A program made the position numbers and the translations under genes. The notes beneath the pieces were generated by a model. That model did no database searches and was not told where the DNA came from. It saw only the letters and a program-made list of their open reading frames with translations. A stretch of DNA of 63,746 nt, counting the filler, from Lenisia limosa (lineage: Eukaryota; Protista; Breviatea), in the NCBI GenBank assembly GCA_001655205.1. It is 16 parts of 16 records of this genome, joined end to end, with 100 filler letters (N's around TTAATTAATTAA, not from the genome) between each part and the next. Parts side by side here need not be neighbours in the genome. Positions count along the whole stretch, not along the records: positions 9,558 to 18,430 come from LPNZ01003935.1; 15 more parts are not named here. One strand, written 5' to 3'. Within the stretch, counting starts at the first letter, position 1. Each line of letters opens with the position of its first letter. Shown here piece after piece: positions 6,658 through 18,931 of this stretch.

Positions 6658-7058
6658 AACAGATATTACATCATATCAACTCGAATGATAATTGACCAAC
6701 AAGTCTCAATGATACTCTGATACCGTGTTATCTTTCTTCATCATTTCGATCGAAAGTCGGTCAAAAAGTCATATTTTAGTGAATATGGGTAAACATATGG
6801 ATAATAACCTCGTAGACGCCAATCATCCAAATGGCATCCCAGGAACAAAGCGGGGTCAATATTGCTGCTGCTCGATTGGTTGCGCGGAATGTGAGCTGGG
6901 CTTTGCTTCAATAAGACTTAATCGATTGTTTTTATTTATTTATATATTGGTTGTTGTTTTATTATACATGTATATATTATTGATTCATCTAGGATAATTT
7001 TTAAACATTTTCTGAGTTTCTACCTTTGAATTTTTTTTATTTCAACATTCCTTCGTGC

Positions 7059-7396: not shown

Positions 7397-10300
7397 CGGG
7401 TAGTTGTTTTTATTTACAACAGAGTTATTTTTGTCTTTTTTTTGTATGTGTTTTCAACAGAGTTGTTTTTGTCTTATCCCAACTCCCCCCCCAAAAAAAC
7501 AGATGACCAGCACTTCCCCCTCAAACACGGCCTTTTCAGACCTGGTGTCCGACATTAGCCCCACTTNNNNNNNNNNNNNNNNNNNNNNNNNNNNNNNNNN
7601 NNNNNNNNNNNNNNNNNNNNNNNNNNNNNNNNNNNNNNNNNNNNNNNNNNNNNNNNNNNNNNNNNNNNNNNNNNNNNNNNNNNNNNNNNNNNNNNNNNNN
7701 NNNNNNNNNNNNNNNNNNNNNNNNNNNNNNNNNNNNNNNNNNNNNNNNNNNNNNNNNNNNNNNNNNNNNNNNNNNNNNNNAACTAACTCATAGAAGTCAA
7801 AAAATTCAATTGGAATTCCGGTTTGGTCATACTCACACCCGCAGGTATTAACGTGGTTAAAGTCTAGCTGTATGGCGTCCGAAGGGTCGCAAAACCCTGG
7901 GTTGGTGGGGTGGACTGATGCTCCAGGATCGGGTGAAAACATATACAATATTATATTTTGACTGGTGATGGGATGCGGTGCTGCAGAAGCGACTAGCATA
8001 GGATTTGCTTGTTGGAGTGATGAGAAGCGGTGCAGAAGCGACTGGCCCTGGGCTTTTTTTTTTTGTTTTGTTGCTATTAGCNNNNNNNNNNNNNNNNNNN
8101 NNNNNNNNNNNNNNNNNNNNNNNNNTTAATTAATTAANNNNNNNNNNNNNNNNNNNNNNNNNNNNNNNNNNNNNNNNNNNNCCCCCCCCCCCCAGTTCAA
8201 TTCCGACTCTATTCGTTACGGTTATGAGTGTAACACTTTGGACAGCCTAACATCTCGCAAAACATCGGACGCTGGAGGTGGTGAGTGGGGGTGAGGTGAT
8301 TTGTGAACACATCTGAAATATTGACTTGATCATGGTTACATCTTCAGGAGTGTCCTTTGTCGTGAACGTGGCTTGTAATGGATCTGGTAATGGTTTGGAC
8401 GCGTACAGGACTGCTGACACACACGGTTGTTGTGTAGGGTACTGCAACACCTACCATAACCCTTGCCCGTTGAAGTTCGTTGGAATGTGAATAGTGTTTT
8501 TATAAAGCATACTACTGAATTGATACCTTGTTTTTTTTGAGCGCTTATTACCTAGGTCATTTGTAACGGGATCCAATGGACAGAACCACTTTTCGGCCTT
8601 ATATTCCGAGCATGATTTGGCAGACGGTCCAGACCCGACTATTTTGGGGGAAAGGAGTGTTTGGCTGGCTCTTAGATAAATGAAGAATTTCATTTTCTCT
8701 CACACTGTCTTTAAAGGGATGTGTACTGTTTGGTGGTATAACCCCGTAAAACATTCAATTGAATAAAACTCCCGGGAAGGGCCTCGAGAGGTCACGAAAC
8801 GAAGACCCAATGGGACACATTCCTGATTCATCAACAATGTTCACTAACAAGGAGACAATTATTAGACACCCAAAAAAAACTTCGACATCTTTGAAGGACT
8901 ACTCTATCTCCACACCCAGAATTCAGTGGTGGTGCATTGCGACATTTCGCCAAAAGTTTGGTGCACATCTCACTTTCATGTAGGCGGATATGTAAAAATC
9001 AGAGTTACTTTCGATATTTAAAGATTGTATTTCCGAAGCCTCGATACTTAAAGATTAATGAAAAAAATAAATCAACAAGATTCTACAAAAAATTTGACAT
9101 ACTACTATCGAAACACGAATCAAAAAAGAAAAACAAATAAACAGACAAATCTACCTCTTTTTAGAGTAGTATTTGGTATATGGGTGGCCTTGATGAATGC
9201 CCTACAAGTGTGAGAGAGTGTATTTTTTTCATGCGATTTATTTGTTCAAAAAAAGTGACTTTGGTGCGGGGAAATACAGTAGAGGAAAGGGTTTTCTCCC
9301 CAACCCACCTGGTGAAGACCCTGGTGATGAAGTACTGCTGCTTGTTGCGAACTATGATGGCCACTGTCCCCATGGCGCCTGGACAAAGTTGAGTTCTCCG
9401 TTCTTAAATTTGATTTAATGATAATTTGATTTCACTCGTTCTCTACCCCCCCCCCCCNNNNNNNNNNNNNNNNNNNNNNNNNNNNNNNNNNNNNNNNNNN
9501 NTTAATTAATTAANNNNNNNNNNNNNNNNNNNNNNNNNNNNNNNNNNNNNNNNNNNNCTAGACTATGTAAACTTTTTTTTTTTTTTCCTACTCCTTTTTT
9601 CAAAGCTTAACGCTTATTAAGTGATTCAAGTATGCTCATTTACGGACAAAAGGATAAAGGGGGTAAGAAGGGTGGGGGACACATCATCGGAATGTCAATA
9701 ATATGATGAATATGATAGAAAAAAAAATATGACATTTACCATATTGTTTTTACCCGCGGGAGCATAAAATATGAGATTTGTCATATTTATTTACCCGCGG
9801 GAATAGGATATGACATATTTTGATCATTTTTCCTCATTTGTTTGAGAGAATAGTCATTTTTGCGTTGTTCAGACACAAAGAAAATGGCAGCCTTTTGGCT
9901 GCACAGAAAGGAATGATCATAAACCCCAATTTCTTCTACAAAATCGACACAAAAAAAACGTATCACTTTTATTCGAGATATGGAACAACAAATATTGAAC
10001 AAACAACCTCGGTGTCAATGTCCCAATTCCTCCTTATTACGTAATAAGGGGTGAGAAAATGACACCCACAACAAAGAACAAGCATATCCAAAAAATGGTT
10101 ATGCATGAAATGGTCAGCTGACCATATTCTATCATAATTCTAACAGATTCTATCAGGATTCTATGAAGAATAAGAGAGACTCTTTTCAAGTTCAGTTCAC
10201 TTGTTTTTAAGTGAAACCCCCCTTTTACAAAAACCTCTAAACCCATTGTCAGCACTACTTACATATTGCCTGGTCGCTAGTACGCGTAATACTAGTGCTA

Positions 10301-11412
10301 GGAAGCGTGCTGCTACCACCCCCAAGCCCATTGCCTCCCATCTTCGGATGGTAAAGACCCCTCTCGACAATAAGAAGGTGTCGATTCCGATATTGATCTT
10401 GGGCTTGAAGGGGAGTTCGCCTTCACTCCGATCCCAAAAAGATCAGGTTTGCTTCGAACATATTTACGAGTATTAGTGTTTTATAAAACCCTCTTGATTC
10501 TGGTCATATTTGTAATGATGTAATCAGAAAAGAGGTTATCCTGCTTCCAAGAGAAGTGATACAATAATGGATGCGATTCACGCTTAACCAACCAATTTAT
10601 CTTCTCTCATTGGTTTAGAACGCGTCGAGAAGGCAGCCGAGTCTGCTCCTTCTCAGAAGCAACAACAACCTCCTGCTCCTGCCTCCTCAAGCAGCGACTT
10701 CACCTTGGCCTTTATCAAGGAGTTAAAGGTTCGCCAATATTGTCAGATAAAGACTACGAGATGATGTTCCAAGCAAGCATTGTACCCCATGCAAATCAAT
10801 AATGCCGAAATCATTCTCACCTTTCAGAACAACTCCGAGCTCCGTGAGGTTTTGGGGAACTCTACAAGTCTTCTGACACTTCATCCTCGGGAACACAGCT
10901 CTTGACTTGCGTTCCGGCAGGCGAACTTAAGCGTGCCAACGAGGTTATCCAGCCTATCCTGAGGTATGTTACTGTAAGGTATCATATATTTGATTAAAAG
11001 GCATGAATAAGGCTGATACGTTAATCAGTCTGTTTATTTTAATACCAAAGCAAGAACTTTCCTTATAAGGAAGGTATGTTCCTCAGATGATTAGTGTGGG
11101 TTACCCTTAATTTTCCAAAAAAATTTGTGAACCAAACTCACCCACACAGAACTATCAACGACATTCTCCCCGACATCGAGTCCCTCCACATCCAGCAGGT
11201 CTTGTCGACAATCTTCCGCGCCTTGGGCCAGGCCCCCATCCTCGGTGACGCCAACATCTCCGCTATCGGTGCCCTAATCGACGGGTTCGTCTCCCAGGCC
11301 GCCAACAAGATCAATGCCGCTCCTTCGGTCGATTACTCCCTCGAGGCCAACCCCTTTTTCGTGGCCGTTCCAGTTCTGGCGCCCATCTCCTCTAACAAGA
11401 AGAAGTATGTGG
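10301..11412 (+). CDS. Spliced ORF upstream of the RT remnant; candidate gag-like ORF1 or adjacent host gene
   Basis: Exons 10619-10728, 10828-10848, 10899-10963 and 11150-~11404 join in phase through GT-AG introns to give ERVEKAAESAP...DFTLAFIKELK/NNSELRE/LLTCVPAGELKRANEVIQPILR/TINDILPDIESLHIQQVLSTIFRALGQAPILGD. No family recognised; start uncertain. Confidence 0.55.
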
Positions 11413-11489
11413 GTATTATATTATTTCACATATCAATATACAATATGTACGTATGCGTCATTGAAATGTCGTTGCTATGGAAATGTCAG

Positions 11490-11760
11490 ACTATGGCAAG
11501 TCAAGTCACATCCTAAATGGTGACTTCGATCTCAAGTATCACGGCATTTCTCAACACGAACGACAAGCACTCCAATCTAACCTCACGATTGCGTCATCTC
11601 CATTTACTTCGACGATGTTTTCGGTGCCGCAACGACCTCCCTTCTCTCCTCATCACCTGGAAAGAGTTAGGCTTCGGCTATGGTGAGCATAAGGTTCTCT
11701 CCCACAAGGAGACCATCGTCTTTGGTGTTCTCCTTGACACTGTATCAATGACCGCAAGCC
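11490..11760 (+). pseudogene. Reverse transcriptase remnant, DIRS/Ngaro-like
   Basis: VISIYFDDVFGA (YxDD motif, ~11593-11628), then in another frame LITWKELGFGYGEHKVLSHKETIVFGVLLDTVSMTAS, matching the post-YxDD pattern LGF...K...FLG..ID...MT.S of YR-retroelement RTs. Frameshifted and missing motifs. Confidence 0.7.
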
Positions 11761-11811
11761 GTGAAATCTCATACCTTAGTTAAATTGAGAAGGCGCGTCA
11801 AGCGTGTCAAA

Positions 11812-12335
11812 AAGGACCTTCTGGAATCCGCCGTCAGCAAGATCTCGGTGAAAACATACAAGTCCGGCATCAAGTCGTACTTGGACTGCTGCGAGGAAGT
11901 GAAAAAGAAACCACTTCCCATTACAGAAGTGAAAGTTATCATTGTTTAACATTATAAAAAAAAAATTAGGTTGAATTATGGTTGGCTTACATCTCCCCGC
12001 GCATGAAGACTTACTCAGGCTATGTTTCCGCTCTCGCCCATTATGTAGCCAGAAATGGCCAGCCCCACCCCATCAAGGGACGTCCAAAGGTATAATGATT
12101 ACGAGTCCATACCTTCCTTAGTATCCAGAATGATCCTGAGCATCAATAAGGCCAACAAGTGTCCACGCACCCGCCCCCCAACTGGCCAACAAGAAAAAGA
12201 ACATCCTCATCCGAGCTATTTACCTCGCAGGCTACTACGGAATCTGCCGCACGAGCGATTTCCTCCCCCTAACACCAAGGACCTTGAGAGAGGCTCCACC
12301 CATTGACAACATCGAGTTTGACGGCAATGAGGCCA
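11812..12335 (+). pseudogene. Tyrosine recombinase, N-terminal part, intron-containing
   Basis: LLESAVSKISVKTYKSGIKSYLDCCEEVKKKPLPITEVK / VELWLAYISPRMKTYSGYVSALAHYVARNGQPHP resembles the YR N-terminal helical domain. IRAIYLAGYYGICRTSDFL is a box I match with Arg at 12248-12250. Box II was not found. Confidence 0.75.
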
Positions 12336-12739
12336 GTATGTTAAAGTTAATCAGCACGGTAAATACACTAACAAACCTTCTTGTTAAACAAGACCTTGCT
12401 CCAAAAAACGCCAGTTCTTGGAAACCATCGCTTAACTTTTGAAAGCAGAAAAAAGAAAAAAAAAAAAAAAAAAAAAANNNNNNNNNNNNNNNNNNNNNNN
12501 NNNNNNNNNNNNNNNNNNNNNNNNNNNNNNNNNAGAAGCAACAAAACCTGACATCGACTTTTAGAAAGAAATCTATAACATAATTACATTGAATTGAGCA
12601 AAATGCTTCACTTTTTTTAAGGTCGCGTTTACTATGAAAACTGAAAATATTGGACATCTTCTTGGCTCTGCTTCACTGAATTTTGTCTTTAGAAAAGTTT
12701 TTTATAGGACGAATTTCGACCTTTTTGCTTGAGAGCACT

Positions 12740-12890
12740 CACAATATGACATTTCTCATATTTCATCGTGTATATGATAGCTCATATCCCCTCGGGAACT
12801 CACTTTTTGGATCATTTTCACACGTGTCATATGATCCCGTGTTATCTTGATTCATCATTTCGACTTGAAAGTCGTTCATATGATCATATC
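12740..12890 (+). repeat. Dispersed repeat family D
   Basis: TTTTTGGATCATTTTC.CACGTGT.ATATG and GTTATC...CATCATTTCGACTTGAAAGT recur at ~6505-6770 and ~47435-47485, with a weaker match at ~9770-9830. Confidence 0.6.
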
Positions 12891-13151
12891 ACTTGTGGAT
12901 CCCGAAAGGCTCTTGAGTTAGCTGAATTTTACTTAAAAAATGAAGTTTTGAAAAACAAAATACGAAAAAAATGAAAAAATTGATCAAATCCACTGTAAAA
13001 AATGACGTTCCAAAAATTCCCATGTGTATAATTAATTATATGTACAATATACTATATCAGAAAAATTCTGTGATATCAGCGAATCAAGGAAACTCCTTGA
13101 ATCCAAATTATAACAAAACCAAGAAAATTTAATGTAAAATAGGTACATATA

Positions 13152-13229
13152 CAGCGACCTCAATAAGTCCTGATATGATTGACAAAAGATAAAGCTCAAT
13201 ATCCGTGTCAGGACTTATCGCGGTCAGTG
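13152..13229. mobile_element. MITE family B (~75 bp), Tc1/mariner-like
   Basis: TA|CAGCGACCTCAATAAGTCCTGA ... TCAGGACTTATCGCGGTCAGTG|TA. Relatives at 20340-20368, 46507-46583 and 49088-49155. Confidence 0.7.
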
Positions 13230-13283
13230 TACATTTATATATGATACATACATCAACATAGAAGGATACATTTTTGAAATTCA

Positions 13284-16200
13284 TTAACTTGCGTCCACCT
13301 CCATTTTAAAGGGAAAACAAAAAATATGAAACGCACTATTAAGGTATCCATACTTCATCACACCATCGCTATTAAAATATACTCACCTGCCTGAGATCGA
13401 TGCAATTGTTCAAACAACGAAATTTCTTTCTAAAAAATATTAAGTAACCAAAAAACCTTACTTCAAGTTGGACAATTTTCTTTAAACCCAGCATGTAGTC
13501 TTCCTAGGAAAAATAAAAAGCAACTGTCAAACCTTCGTTTTAGAATTAATACTTTCCTTCGCTGAGAGAATTAGCTAAGATTGAAACAAACCAAACCCTT
13601 TTCCGCTTCAACTCGACTGCTTAACAGAGAAACCTTTTTATTTAAGTCAGCTATATCTGATTCTAATAGGAATGAAGAGTAACACTTGTCCAAAAAAAAA
13701 ACTAACCAAGCTCTGAGTTAGAAGCTTCTAAAGCTGCAACATACTCTGACATTTCGACCAAATCTGATTCTAATTGTTTGTTTTTGGATTTGAAAATATC
13801 TGATGTTTCAGCTTGAAGTGATGTATCTAGAGTTTTAAAAAAACCCCACAATACACCCACTGTCCACTTTCCGCTTGATAAACTCAATAACTTGTTGGTA
13901 AAGATCCCTTCTGAAAGGAATAAAAAACGATCATTCCCATACCCATTTTCACCATCAGGGATAGAGTGACATTCAATTAACAACTGCCTCAACAAAGACT
14001 CTTGACCTCTCTCAGAAGTTATGTCCTTCGCAACACGTGCCACATCCATTGTATTGCTATATGTATCAGATTGGCTCCTTGTAATTAACAGTAACCGCGT
14101 TAAAAAGTGACCAATATGTTTTTTCTGCAGGGAAATCGGATTTTGAATCTTTTTTTTATACGCTCAGGCCGCGTTCGACCACCCTTAGATTTTCTTAGAT
14201 TTTAGATTTTGTGTTCAACAATCTAATTGTTTTCTTAAATATTTGACTTCAAAAGACCACACATCTCGAGCCCGCTAATAAATCTAAACTTTGCACGTGA
14301 CTCTCAGTGACCATTACTAGCTTGTGCTTAAACACATTTATCGGCCTCAAAGAGTAATATAATTTGTTTCCAATTTTCTCAACAAAAGCATCTTCTAGTT
14401 GGTTCCCCTTTCCTAAATAGAGCAAATCTTTTTTTCTTCTTCTTAAAACCTCCTTTCTATCCTAAAATTAGGGTCTTAACCTAAAGTGGAAGCTGTAGGA
14501 ACAAATAATAGTTGGTTTTGCGTTAACTTTGACCATCTTTCTTTAACTATACTTTTGCTATTCTTGATCAGTTACAGAAAACTTTCTTTACCTGTGAAAT
14601 TGTCATTTACATGGCTAGGAAGCTAGAAACTCATTCAGCAAACTCTAGCCATATATACTGGTACAAGATAAGCTTAGATTTGTGGTCGAACACACGTGCC
14701 TAAATTCTTTAGTATCTAAACTTTCAAATTTGAAAAATATATATACTATCCAAGCAGTCGAACGCGGAATCAAGGCCCTACATTTATGATTCCAGGGGAA
14801 AAAAAAAATTTCACATGAATTTACTGAATGGATTCATTAAAATAAGTGAAAATGTGTATCTGTTGGAAAAATTGGGAGAAAACAATGAATTTTGTGAATA
14901 ATGCAGAGCATATAGTCTACATTCGGGCTCATAATGAAATGAAATTACGTCAATTTACTACTCTTTCATTTTCCTTGATTTTACTCCGTTTTACAATATT
15001 AAGAAATATGGATAACTCATCTTTTCAAAAGCACGAATATATACATGTGGTATATATATTATACGATATCGATATGTATTGTTTTTTTAGATCAAAACTC
15101 TACTCCGCTTGTTCAAAATTCCTCTAAAATTGTATATTTTTACCTAACGTTCACCAAATTAATGAAAATTCGAAATTTCTTACATTATAAACGTCTTCTA
15201 AAATCAAAAAAGTTGTAGAATCCGATTTCCCTGCAGAAAAGACATACCGGTCACTATATATAGAGTATTTATACTGGGGTGGTGGTAATGTCAAGATTAA
15301 CAACTGTCTATCAAAATCTATTTTCGTGCTGTTACTAAATGTACGATTTGCCAAAAGTCTCCAGTGTTTCTCACTTTGGCTTTTGAAAAACAGTGTAACA
15401 GATCATATTTTTATTTTTATCAAAAATAAATATTTTCAGATTATGTGTTTGCACTTAAGGAAACCAACAAAACTCTTAAAAAATTTTCACTTACTGCCTG
15501 CCTTCCCAGCAAACCTAGAAGGATAAGATTCATGAGAAAGGACATATGACCCTCTACATAACCCAAGTAAGCAACCCTGAACCCGTTTTGTGTCAGGGAT
15601 TCAGGAGTTGCCAAAGAATTATCAAAGGCTTGTGATACTAAAAATTAGCCTACTCTAATCTGCAGTTATTGTAAAAAACGTCATCTTCATCGAATTCTAG
15701 TTCTTCACGATATAAATCTATTTGTTGGATAACATCTGAACTGTTGCTTTCAGCAGCTTTCTAAAACAGTAAATAATAAAACAGAAGCAAAACCTCTAAT
15801 AGGTGGTCAAGTCCTGCACTAATAAATTCCGTTCGTAGTTGACAACGCATTGTAACATTATTAGGTTTTAAAATCAGAGCATTAATTAACGCTAAACATG
15901 ATTCCTAAAAGTTTATGAAGAGGTAACTAAACAAACCCAAGTTTCAGATGTACAACTATGATTTACAGATTTAATAATACTTGAAAATCTTGATCGTTGA
16001 TGTAATAATGATCCCCGTTCAGCAAATCCTTGCAAAACCAGACTAAGTGTGTAAACTATTTAAAACTAACGAGTGTCCTTTAAATGAAAACATGGCAAAA
16101 ACAGCAAGCAGCCGAAGAATCAATGGCTGGATTGACTAAAAGTGGATTAATCCAATTGAACTAACAGTGATATGACAGTCAACACATGAAAGTAGAACTG

Positions 16201-17341
16201 CAACACAATGATCTATCAATAAAACTGCTTCCATTCCAACCTAGGCTTGGTAAGTCAAAATGAAACAAACTCGATAGTTCATGAGAATTCCGATGATTGC
16301 AACAGAAGATTCCACAATCTTTTTATCTGTGACATTTCTATTAATAATAAAAAGGCTATTACCTGCTAACATTAACCACAGCTGGTTTCATTGTTGAGAA
16401 AACGGCAGATGGGCCTTCTTCTTCAATGAAAGAGATCATCCAATCTGGGCTAATTGGGTTAAATAACACAAATGTGTTCAAACCCTTGCTCTTCAAGACT
16501 TGACCGAATTAACGCAAGTGAATCAGGTGTAACTTCCCCTGTTAAAAGAGAAACAGCCTAGTATAATACATTTTTCCTAAAAAAACCTCAAGAGGAGATA
16601 AACTCTCAGAATCATTCATTTCCAACACATCTGCCTTTGTTGATGGGTTTTGAATCCGTAATTCTTCAGGTAGAAACTAAGAATAAATACAAAACACTAC
16701 ATTCGCTGGGAGGATCATTGTGGCTCCACGTTTAAGATTTGGACTATAAAAGATATGAGAAAGGTCTTGAAAAAGAAACCCATAAGACGCTTGGTCAGAA
16801 AAATCAGTTAACATTTTGTAAAGTTTTTATCTGTTGATGAAGGAACACAAAAAGTGACCTCATCTCCGTTGGAAATTTGGAGTTGACAATTCTTTCCAAC
16901 AAGTTTACCATTCACAAACGTTCCATTTGCACAAAGTCACAACTAAAAAACCATACCTCCCATCCTCAATCCAGAAATCAAGAACAGAATTCATCATCTT
17001 GAAACTTACAATACAATGAACTGAGGAAACTGTTCGGTCAGGGATTCGCACAACACATTCCTTTGCTCGTCCTATTGAAACTGAAAGGGTGAGCCTTCTC
17101 TCTTCGTGTAACCTTAACTAACCTTGCTGCTCTTCTAAAGCAAATGACTGAAATGAATCTTGAATTGATACCTGAAAGCATGAAACAGAAAATCCCTTAC
17201 CATTCTCCCCCATAGTTTCTTCTTCGGGTGTGGATGTGGATTGTTTTTCATTCTTGTCAGCTTGGCAGTGGTTGGCAAGTGGTTGGCAAGTTGGTTGGGC
17301 AGGTGGCAAGGGCAAGGCAGTGGTGGACAAGTGGGGTCCAT
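13284..17341 (-). CDS. FHA + formin-type GBD/FH3 + coiled-coil protein; many short introns; 3' end uncertain
   Basis: From ATG 17341: LWGRM/VSIQDSFQSFALEEQQ/VSIGRAKECVVRIPDRTVSSVHCI...WIEDGS/ANGTFVNGKLVGKN...NGDEVTF (FHA). Then LALIRSSLEEQGPDWMISF, ILRLLAVFAMFSFKGHS/LVLQGF...RFSSII and CLALINALILKPNNVTMRCQLRTEFISAGLDHLLE (GBD/FH3). Coiled-coil exons at ~14050-13390. Confidence 0.8.
14106..15255. mobile_element. ~1.15-kb segment bounded by 37-bp inverted repeats (putative non-autonomous DNA transposon)
   Basis: 14106-14142 AGTGACCAATATGTTTTTTCTGCAGGGAAATCGGATT against the reverse complement of 15219-15255 AGTGACCGGTATGTCTTTTCTGCAGGGAAATCGGATT (3 mismatches). No clear target-site duplication. 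Confidence 0.6.
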
Positions 17342-17761
17342 GGGGCCGGCGGCGATGAGGGTACCAGGGGCATGATCTCGGATCTCTGAAGATTATAGTG
17401 ATGCCCTAAGGGTAACAGAATTTTATCGTTTACGGTTTCAAAGTCTCTATCATCGGTTTTAGTTAGTCAGTGTATTTATTATTGTAAATTCGGTAAGCGG
17501 TAGGCAATTCACCATCACAGTCTCGAGATCAACGCACTTTGGTTCACCCCCTCAAGAGTTCCGCTCTATTCCGGCATAAAAACACTTTAGTTTGCTTTAA
17601 AAACTCTTGTAAGCGGCGTCAGACCTTCATATTTATGGGACTCTTTCAGGAGTCTTGTCCTCCTCAATTCTTCTCTCTCCAGACTGCCCGTTTTCATGTA
17701 CATCTTACCATTACAAATGCATATAGAGCCCATATAAAACGCATTCCTGTAGATGATTTAA

Positions 17762-18360
17762 TTATTGGGGTTATGACCGTTGTAGCTCGTTTGCTTGGGG
17801 TTATTACGGCTGCAGCTCATTTGCTTGGGGTTATTACGGCTGCAACTCATTTGCTTGGGGTTATTACGGCTGCAACTCATTTGCTTGGGGTTATTATGAT
17901 TGTGGCTCGTTTGCTTGCGTTTATTACGATTGTAGCTCGTTTGTTTGGGTTTATTACGGTTGCAGCTCATTTGCTTGGGGTTATAACGGTTCGGTTGCAG
18001 ATCATTTGCTTGGGTTTATTACAGTTGTAGCTCATNNNNNNNNNNNNNNNNNNNNNNNNNNNNNNNNNNNNNNNNNNNNNNNNNNNNNNNNNNNNNNNNN
18101 NNNNNNNNNNNNNNNNNNNNNNNNNNNNNNNNNNNNNNNNNNNNNNNNNNNNNNNNTGCAGCTCATTTGCTTGGGTTACAACGGTTGCAGGACATTTGCT
18201 TGGGGTTATTTTTGTGGTAGCTGATTAGCATGGTGTTATTACGGTTGCGGCTCATTTGCTTGAGGTAATGACGGTTTCAGATCATTTGCTTTAGGTTATT
18301 ACGTTTGCATATCATTTGCTTGGGATTATTTCGGTTACAGCTCATTTGTTTGGCGTTATT
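17762..18360. repeat. 30-bp minisatellite (TTGCTTGGGGTTATTACGGCTGCAGCTCAT)
   Basis: Head-to-tail degenerate copies without unique spacers, interrupted by an N gap. Confidence 0.92.
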
Positions 18361-18931
18361 ATTTTAGACTACGATTCTAACTACCCTTTTGGTGGTTTAT
18401 TGGGGACATGCTCCTAGCAAGCTTTGTAATNNNNNNNNNNNNNNNNNNNNNNNNNNNNNNNNNNNNNNNNNNNNTTAATTAATTAANNNNNNNNNNNNNN
18501 NNNNNNNNNNNNNNNNNNNNNNNNNNNNNNAAAGACCGGTAAAATATCGATAGTTTTCGAGGATATATCGAGAAATTCAGTCTTTTTTCGAACCGAAGTA
18601 AAGCTCTAGGTTTTAAAAGAAAGTGTATTAAATACAAGACAAGGGAAATACATACACATTAAGACCATATGTCGGGGAAGCTTCCTGAAGCGTTTTGGGT
18701 CCTCTTCCTCTCCATGCAGGGGCCAGACTTCTTTGATGTCTGTAGTTAAATAATAAAAAGTGATAAAAGTGGTCAAAATTAAAAATAAAAAATTATTTAT
18801 TGCAACTACAAACGTTTTTTTGAAAAGCCACCCAATTTTTGAAAAACGGGGGGGGGGGTGTTGTTGCTGTGCACGGAGTTGCAAGGCAAATGATTGATTA
18901 ATTAATATGATACTACAATTCTACATCTCTT

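Follow-up and report, generated by a model that had tools for sequence, protein, structure and literature searches.

The 63,746-nucleotide stretch of Lenisia limosa DNA analysed here (the window; 16 parts of assembly GCA_001655205.1 joined end to end) contains, at positions 9962–12441 of the + strand, one copy of a multi-copy repeat of this AT-rich genome. The copy has the layout of one long + strand gene in which GC-richer coding blocks are split by AT-rich GT...AG intervals, with a putative tyrosine recombinase (YR) remnant at its end. An original prediction, made from the sequence of positions 10301–12335, had described a DIRS/Ngaro-like retroelement in which a reverse transcriptase (RT) remnant is followed by a YR that appears to carry spliceosomal introns. 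The reading developed below is that this is probably a dead, 3′-truncated copy of a repeated mobile element with an intron-bearing YR gene, and that the family was copied with its introns in place.

Comparisons with paralogues drew on three partial copies in contig L001, which match 10722–11436 at 88%, 10538–11024 at 71% in reverse orientation, and exons 1 and 2 together with the 5′ region, and on contigs of X1, a DNA run of the same organism, 290 of which fall on 9558–12477 at ≥90% identity. The summed X1 contig depth over the gene is about 2–10 times the ~45 per contig. The locus itself is represented with 100% identity by L002, an independent contig of an ENA metagenome assembly. In L002 the N gap at window positions 12478–12535 amounts to only 40 real bases (6916–6955, the end of an A-run and then unique sequence), and the recombinase is therefore not interrupted by the gap.

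Organization and decay of the copy

The gene is preceded by a conserved 5′ non-coding region (9962–10269), the most abundant part of the family, which matches L001 2469–2782. Exon 1 (10270–10446, 52% GC) is open in frame 1, and its start codon has decayed to CTG from the ATG seen in L001 (2712–2714). It is followed by interval I1 (10447–10618; 172 nt, GT...AG, 34% GC), which misses the frame of exon 2 by 1 nt; the 3′ part of I1 is kept in the reverse L001 copy, and other copies differ there by indels (joints 10339>10610 and 10320>10458). Exon 2 (10619–10728, 54% GC) is also open in frame 1, encodes a Q/P/S-rich stretch ending in ...FIKELK and matches L001 2798–2871 at 85%. Interval I2 (10729–10827; 99 nt, GTTCGC...TTTCAG, 40% GC), which has stops in the coding frame, joins it in frame to exon 3 (10828–10963). 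Interval I3/4 (10964–11149; 186 nt, GTATGT...CACAG, 33% GC) contains a second GTATGT at 11074, and its removal joins ...QPILR in frame to TINDIL..., the beginning of exon 4.

Exon 4 (‘region A’, 11150–11404) is the best-conserved coding block, with 81% protein identity to L001 6804–7109. It has no known domain, as neither Pfam nor Atlas gave a match, and an AF2 model built from two sequences was helical with a pLDDT of 52.7, unusable for a fold search. The homologous-protein search with the exon-4 open reading frame (ORF) returned only the ORF itself and one paralogue. Beyond exon 4, interval I5 (11405–11489; 85 nt, GTATGT...GTCAG, 31% GC) has a join that appears to be off by one in this copy, and it is followed by the RT-like motifs (11522–11759) and the recombinase-like blocks. 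The last interval, I8 (12336–12392; 57 nt, GTATGT...ACTAAC...AAG, 32% GC), leads in frame into the last coding stretch (12393–12441), where the truncation lies, and an A-rich tract at the break (12442–12477) was identified by Tandem Repeats Finder as a mononucleotide run.

The copy is dead and 3′-truncated. Apart from the lost start codon, at least five frame changes run across it. A 1-nt deletion at 10850, in exon 3, shifts the frame in most X1 copies at ≥90% identity as well; in the forward L001 copy and in two X1 contigs one more C follows 10850, and the frame is thereby restored. More frame changes lie near 11590, 11650, 11770 and 12180. The recombinase reading ends at ~12419–12441 in an A-tract, and three X1 contigs go on differently behind 12419 with the frame open; downstream of 12441 in this copy, no recombinase-like reading was found. 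A poly(A)-tailed retrocopy, with the A-tract at 12449–12477 as its tail, was considered and rejected, since introns are kept in the copy and other copies extend past 12419.

A candidate tyrosine recombinase remnant

A recombinase-like reading starts at ~11818, on the same strand as the RT-like motifs, and proceeds via four frame changes. Profile and language-model comparisons lend weak but consistent support to a YR gene remnant made up of a SAM-like N-terminal domain and the first 50–70 residues of the catalytic domain. The putative first half of the SAM-like domain (11818–11934, frame 1) was picked up by three approaches. In Pfam, Phage_int_SAM_1 aligned over profile positions 10–38 with 11761–11946 (13.2 bits, E=0.11, cut-off 22.3), and the Atlas language-model features placed the same segment near the Phage_int_SAM and integrase SAM-like clusters (0.95). 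A XerD profile, which we built from 80 XerD sequences and scored on the frame-joined translation with an X at each break, gave 4.9 bits, a score reached by 1 of 2000 shuffles. Its alignment covers profile positions 11–75, of which 11–42 correspond to the first SAM-like half, and passes gap-free over the junction of the 35-nt interval described below into the second half (11970–12089; frame 0, open, 53% GC). The best XerD fragment among 176 six-frame fragments was one at 11752, which holds 11761–11946.

The linker and the presumptive start of the catalytic domain (12122–12335) contain a 1-nt frame shift in a C-run near 12175–12181. For the segment 12182–12337, the Atlas features pointed to Tyr recombinase/DUF3435 (0.94), DUF3504 (0.92) and Phage_integrase (0.88), and the candidate first catalytic Arg is codon 12248–12250 in ...YYGICRTSDF.... 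The H, R and Y catalytic positions are absent because the copy is truncated before them. By itself, 12182–12337 had no Pfam match; neither it nor 12182–12439, in which ~50–70 domain residues remain, matched DUF3504 (PF12012) in Pfam at E up to 10, and the homologous-protein search with 12182–12439 found no relatives. Pfam, PHROGs and NCBIfam searches on single-frame pieces yielded nothing except Phage_int_SAM_1 at E=0.11, and phmmer searches of the PDB with four pieces returned a chance match to MsbA only.

Intron-like intervals shared among copies

Two intervals within the recombinase-like region had been flagged by the original prediction, and both descriptions hold. The 35-nt interval (11935–11969; GTTATC...TTAG, 14% GC) contains a stop as well as a TTAAC 20 nt ahead of its AG; removing it joins ...ITEVK in frame 1 to VELWLAYIS... 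in frame 0. The 32-nt interval (12090–12121; GTATAA...CTTAG) needs a 1-nt correction; a CAG at 12126–12128 is another candidate for its 3′ site, with the same correction. Taken over the whole gene, the intervals look like real introns of a YR gene, and the best candidates differ from these two.

Several features of the DNA bear on this. All of the intervals have the form GT...AG, and those that join in frame are I2, I3/4, the 35-nt interval and I8. The coding blocks have a GC content of 43–58% and the intervals one of 14–40%, the latter resembling the intergenic background. GTATGT occurs four times on the + strand of the 8.9-kb piece that holds the element (9558–18430, LPNZ01003935.1), and all four occurrences fall inside the 2.2-kb element (p about 0.004 under uniform placement); three of them (10964, 11405 and 12336) stand at the downstream ends of coding blocks and the fourth, at 11074, lies within I3/4. 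Interval I8 exhibits textbook fungal-type intron signals, with an ACTAAC branch site at the canonical distance, its A being 21 nt upstream of the 3′ AG.

Sharing of intervals among copies was shown for I2, I3/4, the start of I5 and the 32-nt interval, a set that does not extend to the 35-nt interval and I8; to this extent the comparison of intron positions proposed earlier bore out a spliceosomal-intron-like interruption of the YR gene. Both boundaries of I2 are kept in the forward L001 copy and its GT in the reverse copy. The GTATGT of I3/4 is kept in three copies and its 3′ CAG in the forward L001 copy, which also has the GTATGT and first bases of I5 before it diverges. The splice dinucleotides of I2, I3/4 and I5 are thus retained in paralogous copies that are 12–30% diverged. 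A diverged counterpart of the 32-nt interval, with a common TTACGAGT and a CTGAC branch-like site, lies just before 12122 in two X1 contigs, indicating that this interval is ancestral. Among the ~4 listed X1 copies that cover the 35-nt interval, none lacks it. The intervals found in L001 copies or X1 contigs are accordingly not private indels of this copy.

In exon 4, third codon positions account for 20 of the 33 mismatches between the window and L001 (chi-square p about 0.004), which suggests that selection was acting on the interval-carrying lineages during part of the divergence. Such signs of purifying selection could also be expected of a host gene or gene family domesticated from a YR element that gained its introns after domestication, a possibility that had been raised before, and intron-bearing YR-derived host genes, the DUF3504 genes, do exist (PMC3212892, PMC13465315). 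This explanation is highly improbable, as it is contradicted by the lost start codon, the multiple frameshifts and the truncation within the catalytic domain, by the many rearranged copies among other repeats, and by the occurrence of the 10850 frameshift in most copies at ≥90% identity.

Several observations count against an intron-bearing YR element. The ends of the element are not defined, the support for the YR lies under every curated threshold, and the representative protein search with 11761–11946 gave 0 matches. A correction of 1 nt is required at three junctions, those of I1, I5 and the 32-nt interval, and the 32-nt interval is read through without a stop in frame 1 (ORF 12055–12306). 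Both this interval and the 35-nt one are shorter than the others (57–186 nt) and have poor 5′ sites (GTATAA and GTTATC, respectively). Between copies, the introns have diverged no more than the exons, so it may be that most of the compared copies arose as neutral duplicates when their ancestor was already dead. The RNA run X2 (a polyA metatranscriptome) yields a single 165-nt contig that lies inside exon 4 and covers no junction. Gene predictors are, moreover, known to invent introns in decayed copies of YR elements (PMC13465315).

Alternatively, this could be a pseudogenised YR copy that never had introns, with intervals that are AT-rich insertions or stretches of decay and owe their GT...AG form to a free choice of boundaries in stop-rich filler. 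The several independent frameshifts and indels of the copy, the shortness and weak 5′ sites of the two flagged intervals, the roughly equal divergence of introns and exons, and the precedent of invented introns all favour such an origin. It nevertheless seems unlikely to us, given the clustering of GTATGT within the element, where three of its four sites close a coding block, the ACTAAC of I8 at the canonical distance, the sharp alternation of GC content between blocks and intervals, the same intervals and boundaries in copies up to 30% diverged, and the third-position bias of exon 4, which places the interval-carrying lineages under selection.

The X2 contig has 90–95% identity to exon 4 (window 11229–11281) with diverged flanks, and it may represent transcription of a different copy of the family or DNA carry-over. 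On the minus strand, a candidate host gene at window 14049–13571 encodes a coiled-coil-like product for which no Pfam family was found. In it, a 44-nt GTTAGT...TTAG interval (13706–13663) joins two ORFs in frame, so that short introns are plausible in this genome.

RT-like motifs upstream of the recombinase

Direct reading confirmed YFDD, LGF...FGVLLDTVSMTAS and the recombinase-like stretch where the original prediction had placed them, on one strand. Three RT-like motifs, read by eye, can be ordered as A-like (DFDLKYHGI, 11522–11548, frame 2), C (YFDD, 11605–11616, frame 1) and D/E (LGF..K..FGVLLD, the LGF...FGVLLDTVSMTAS stretch, 11667–11759, frame 0). They follow in the right order directly upstream of the YR, and they occupy three frames within 240 nt. 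Motif B is missing between them, and no RNase H-like sequence was found in any frame; there is no room for RNase H, because motif E ends at 11759 and the SAM-like domain begins at ~11818. Searches of Pfam, PHROGs, NCBIfam and the PDB gave no RT match on any piece. A self-built profile of diversity-generating retroelement (DGR) RTs found no signal in the X-joined RT-like pieces, a result that is uninformative since the profile is remote from LTR and DIRS RTs. The stretch is at most a vestige, and the chances that it is a genuine vestige of an RT are roughly even. Of the predicted succession of RT remnant and YR, the YR part thus stands, through the weak Pfam match, the Atlas features and the XerD profile, and the RT part is left without a profile match; the proposed profile searches of the pieces came out the same way, with Phage_int_SAM_1 at E=0.11 and nothing for RT.

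These motifs are relevant to the possibility that the element is an intron-retaining YR retroelement of the Ngaro/DIRS kind, copied from unspliced genomic RNA and present here as an internally deleted derivative in which the entire RNase H and most of the RT are gone. The order of the motifs just upstream of a YR on the same strand, the RT-then-YR arrangement, which is that of Ngaro/DIRS, and the introns common to several copies would all agree with it. We regard it as distinctly unlikely, because no RT match was obtained on any piece, with the DGR-RT profile included, because the motifs are spread over three frames without motif B or RNase H, and because the region upstream of them (exon 4) is predicted, with low confidence, to be helical. 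The termini also speak against it: neither inverted terminal repeats with an internal complementary region nor split direct repeats were found in this truncated copy. The repeat search, which covered window 9558–12477 and L002 2500–9500, gave nothing beyond A/T arms of low complexity and one inverted repeat of 39 nt, an outcome that applies to this truncated copy only. With three short motifs in three frames, no profile support, no RNase H and no terminal repeats, the label of a DIRS/Ngaro-like retroelement was not upheld.

Both inverted repeats were rejected as element termini. The one at 9573–9610/12432–12469 is of low complexity. The 39-nt repeat (90% complementary), which flanks the locus at L002 3809–3847 and window 12647–12685 (L002 7069–7107), recurs at L001 3291–3367 with longer flanking similarity and appears to belong to another repeat family.

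Repeat family and surroundings

Other copies part from this one upstream of 9962–9966, as seen from the loose ends of X1 contigs. In bins 9950–10243 the summed X1 depth is 1000–2400, compared with about 40–50 per single contig (25–50×), so that this 5′ region is about five times as abundant as the gene body and 25–50 times as abundant as single-copy sequence. It may belong to the family as a terminal or solo repeat, or represent a high-copy element in its own right. Differences between the X1 copies and this copy are mostly transitions, in which C>T and G>A (27 places) exceed T>C and A>G (13 places), and this excess hints at deamination-type decay of the other copies.

The neighbourhood consists of other repeats, including a remnant of a Tc1/mariner-type transposase at L002 1126–1640, upstream of the window piece (HTH_Tnp_Tc3_2, E=0.0017). 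At window 9724–9816, a 42-nt unit is present in 2.3 tandem copies with AATATGACATTT and the palindrome ACCCGCGGG, and a related AATATGACATTT motif appears again at 12730–12760; a DNA transposon could have these as its subterminal repeats. A 30-nt tandem repeat forms two arrays, at window 17765–18035 (8.9 copies) and 18157–18361 (6.9 copies), which are interrupted by an N gap and translate as a 10-residue peptide repeat in ORF 17539–18030. The stored ENA gene calls at L002 4250–4720 and 5516–5956 translate TGA as Trp (code 4-like), and the called proteins on those ENA contigs are therefore partly artefacts.

Wider searches returned little. Megablast against a phage collection gave no match, nothing was found in L002 with Rfam, and the homologous-protein search with the called ORF in the L001 5′ region retrieved only that ORF. 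In the JGI metagenomes, a collection without this organism, protein patterns had 0 matches and a 19-nt DNA pattern had 4 chance matches only.

Discussion

If the family is that of an intron-bearing YR element, as we consider probable, the intervals would be ordinary spliceosomal introns of the ancestral gene, older than the divergence of its copies within this genome, and purifying selection would have accompanied the divergence of one exon or more. Introns that predate the divergence of the copies would imply that the family multiplied with its introns retained, so that spliced mRNA would not have been the template of copying. The copying may have taken place at the DNA level, either through simple duplication or through excision and insertion by a recombinase as in Cryptons; alternatively, it may have proceeded from unspliced RNA. 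Elements copied from unspliced RNA keep their introns, and the premise of the original prediction, that copying through RNA should remove introns, was too strong.

The demonstrable features fit an intron-bearing YR element of the Crypton type, and DIRS/Ngaro ancestry is possible but unproven. Cryptons are DNA transposons with a tyrosine recombinase, and their original description came from pathogenic fungi; fungal Cryptons have intron-containing YR genes and are copied with the introns preserved. The element resembles them in its single long YR gene with apparent introns, in the lack of detected long terminal repeats and in its probably intron-preserving copying, and differs from them in the RT-like motifs upstream of the YR. 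A GCR1_C-type C-terminal domain would lie beyond the truncation of this copy, and the link to DUF3435/DUF3504 is a language-model lead without a significant profile match. With Ngaro and DIRS1-like elements it shares a YR with a SAM-like N-terminal domain and, in the case of Ngaro, candidate RT motifs upstream of the YR on the same strand; unlike in those elements, the RT is not verifiable here, RNase H and methyltransferase are not seen, and the gene contains several intron-like intervals. Penelope-like elements and other intron-retaining retroelements would be a precedent for an element that keeps introns despite reverse transcription. They differ in belonging to another RT clade and in having a GIY-YIG endonuclease and no tyrosine recombinase, and an RT is not demonstrated here.

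Ngaro elements are abundant in some basidiomycete fungi and DIRS elements in Mucoromycota, in an account that makes no mention of introns in fungal DIRS/Ngaro (PMC3783388). A parallel may also be drawn with the Glomhopper/CryptonA DUF3504 elements of Glomeromycota, most copies of which are truncated or ‘intronised’, with intron positions that are not consistent (PMC13465315). Like these, the YR element described here has multiple copies in a genome that is AT-rich and full of repeats, and its predicted introns, lying in decayed copies, call for RNA support. Unlike in Glomhopper, several intervals are common to copies, and the relation to DUF3504 consists of the Atlas feature score of 0.92 with no Pfam match at E up to 10.

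There is also a slim chance that one intron-bearing gene encoded both an RT and a YR, making this a true hybrid family. Such a family could be a YR retroelement with unspliced RNA as its replication template and a tolerance for several spliceosomal introns, or a former Ngaro/DIRS-like element that switched to Crypton-like transposition at the DNA level while its RT decayed.

Intron-bearing YR elements are already known from Cryptons and Glomhoppers, and on present evidence the locus is a further decayed copy of a YR element in a repeat-rich genome. Its practical value is as a seed with which the rest of the genome can be mined for longer copies, and it illustrates again why introns called in decayed copies of transposons should be backed by RNA. 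A family whose RT, RNase H and YR were all intact within one gene interrupted by introns, if it exists, would bear on whether YR retroelements use a spliced or an unspliced template and on the evolutionary link between Cryptons and DIRS/Ngaro; a hybrid family, if real, would represent a living intermediate in the relationship that has been proposed between Cryptons and YR retroelements.

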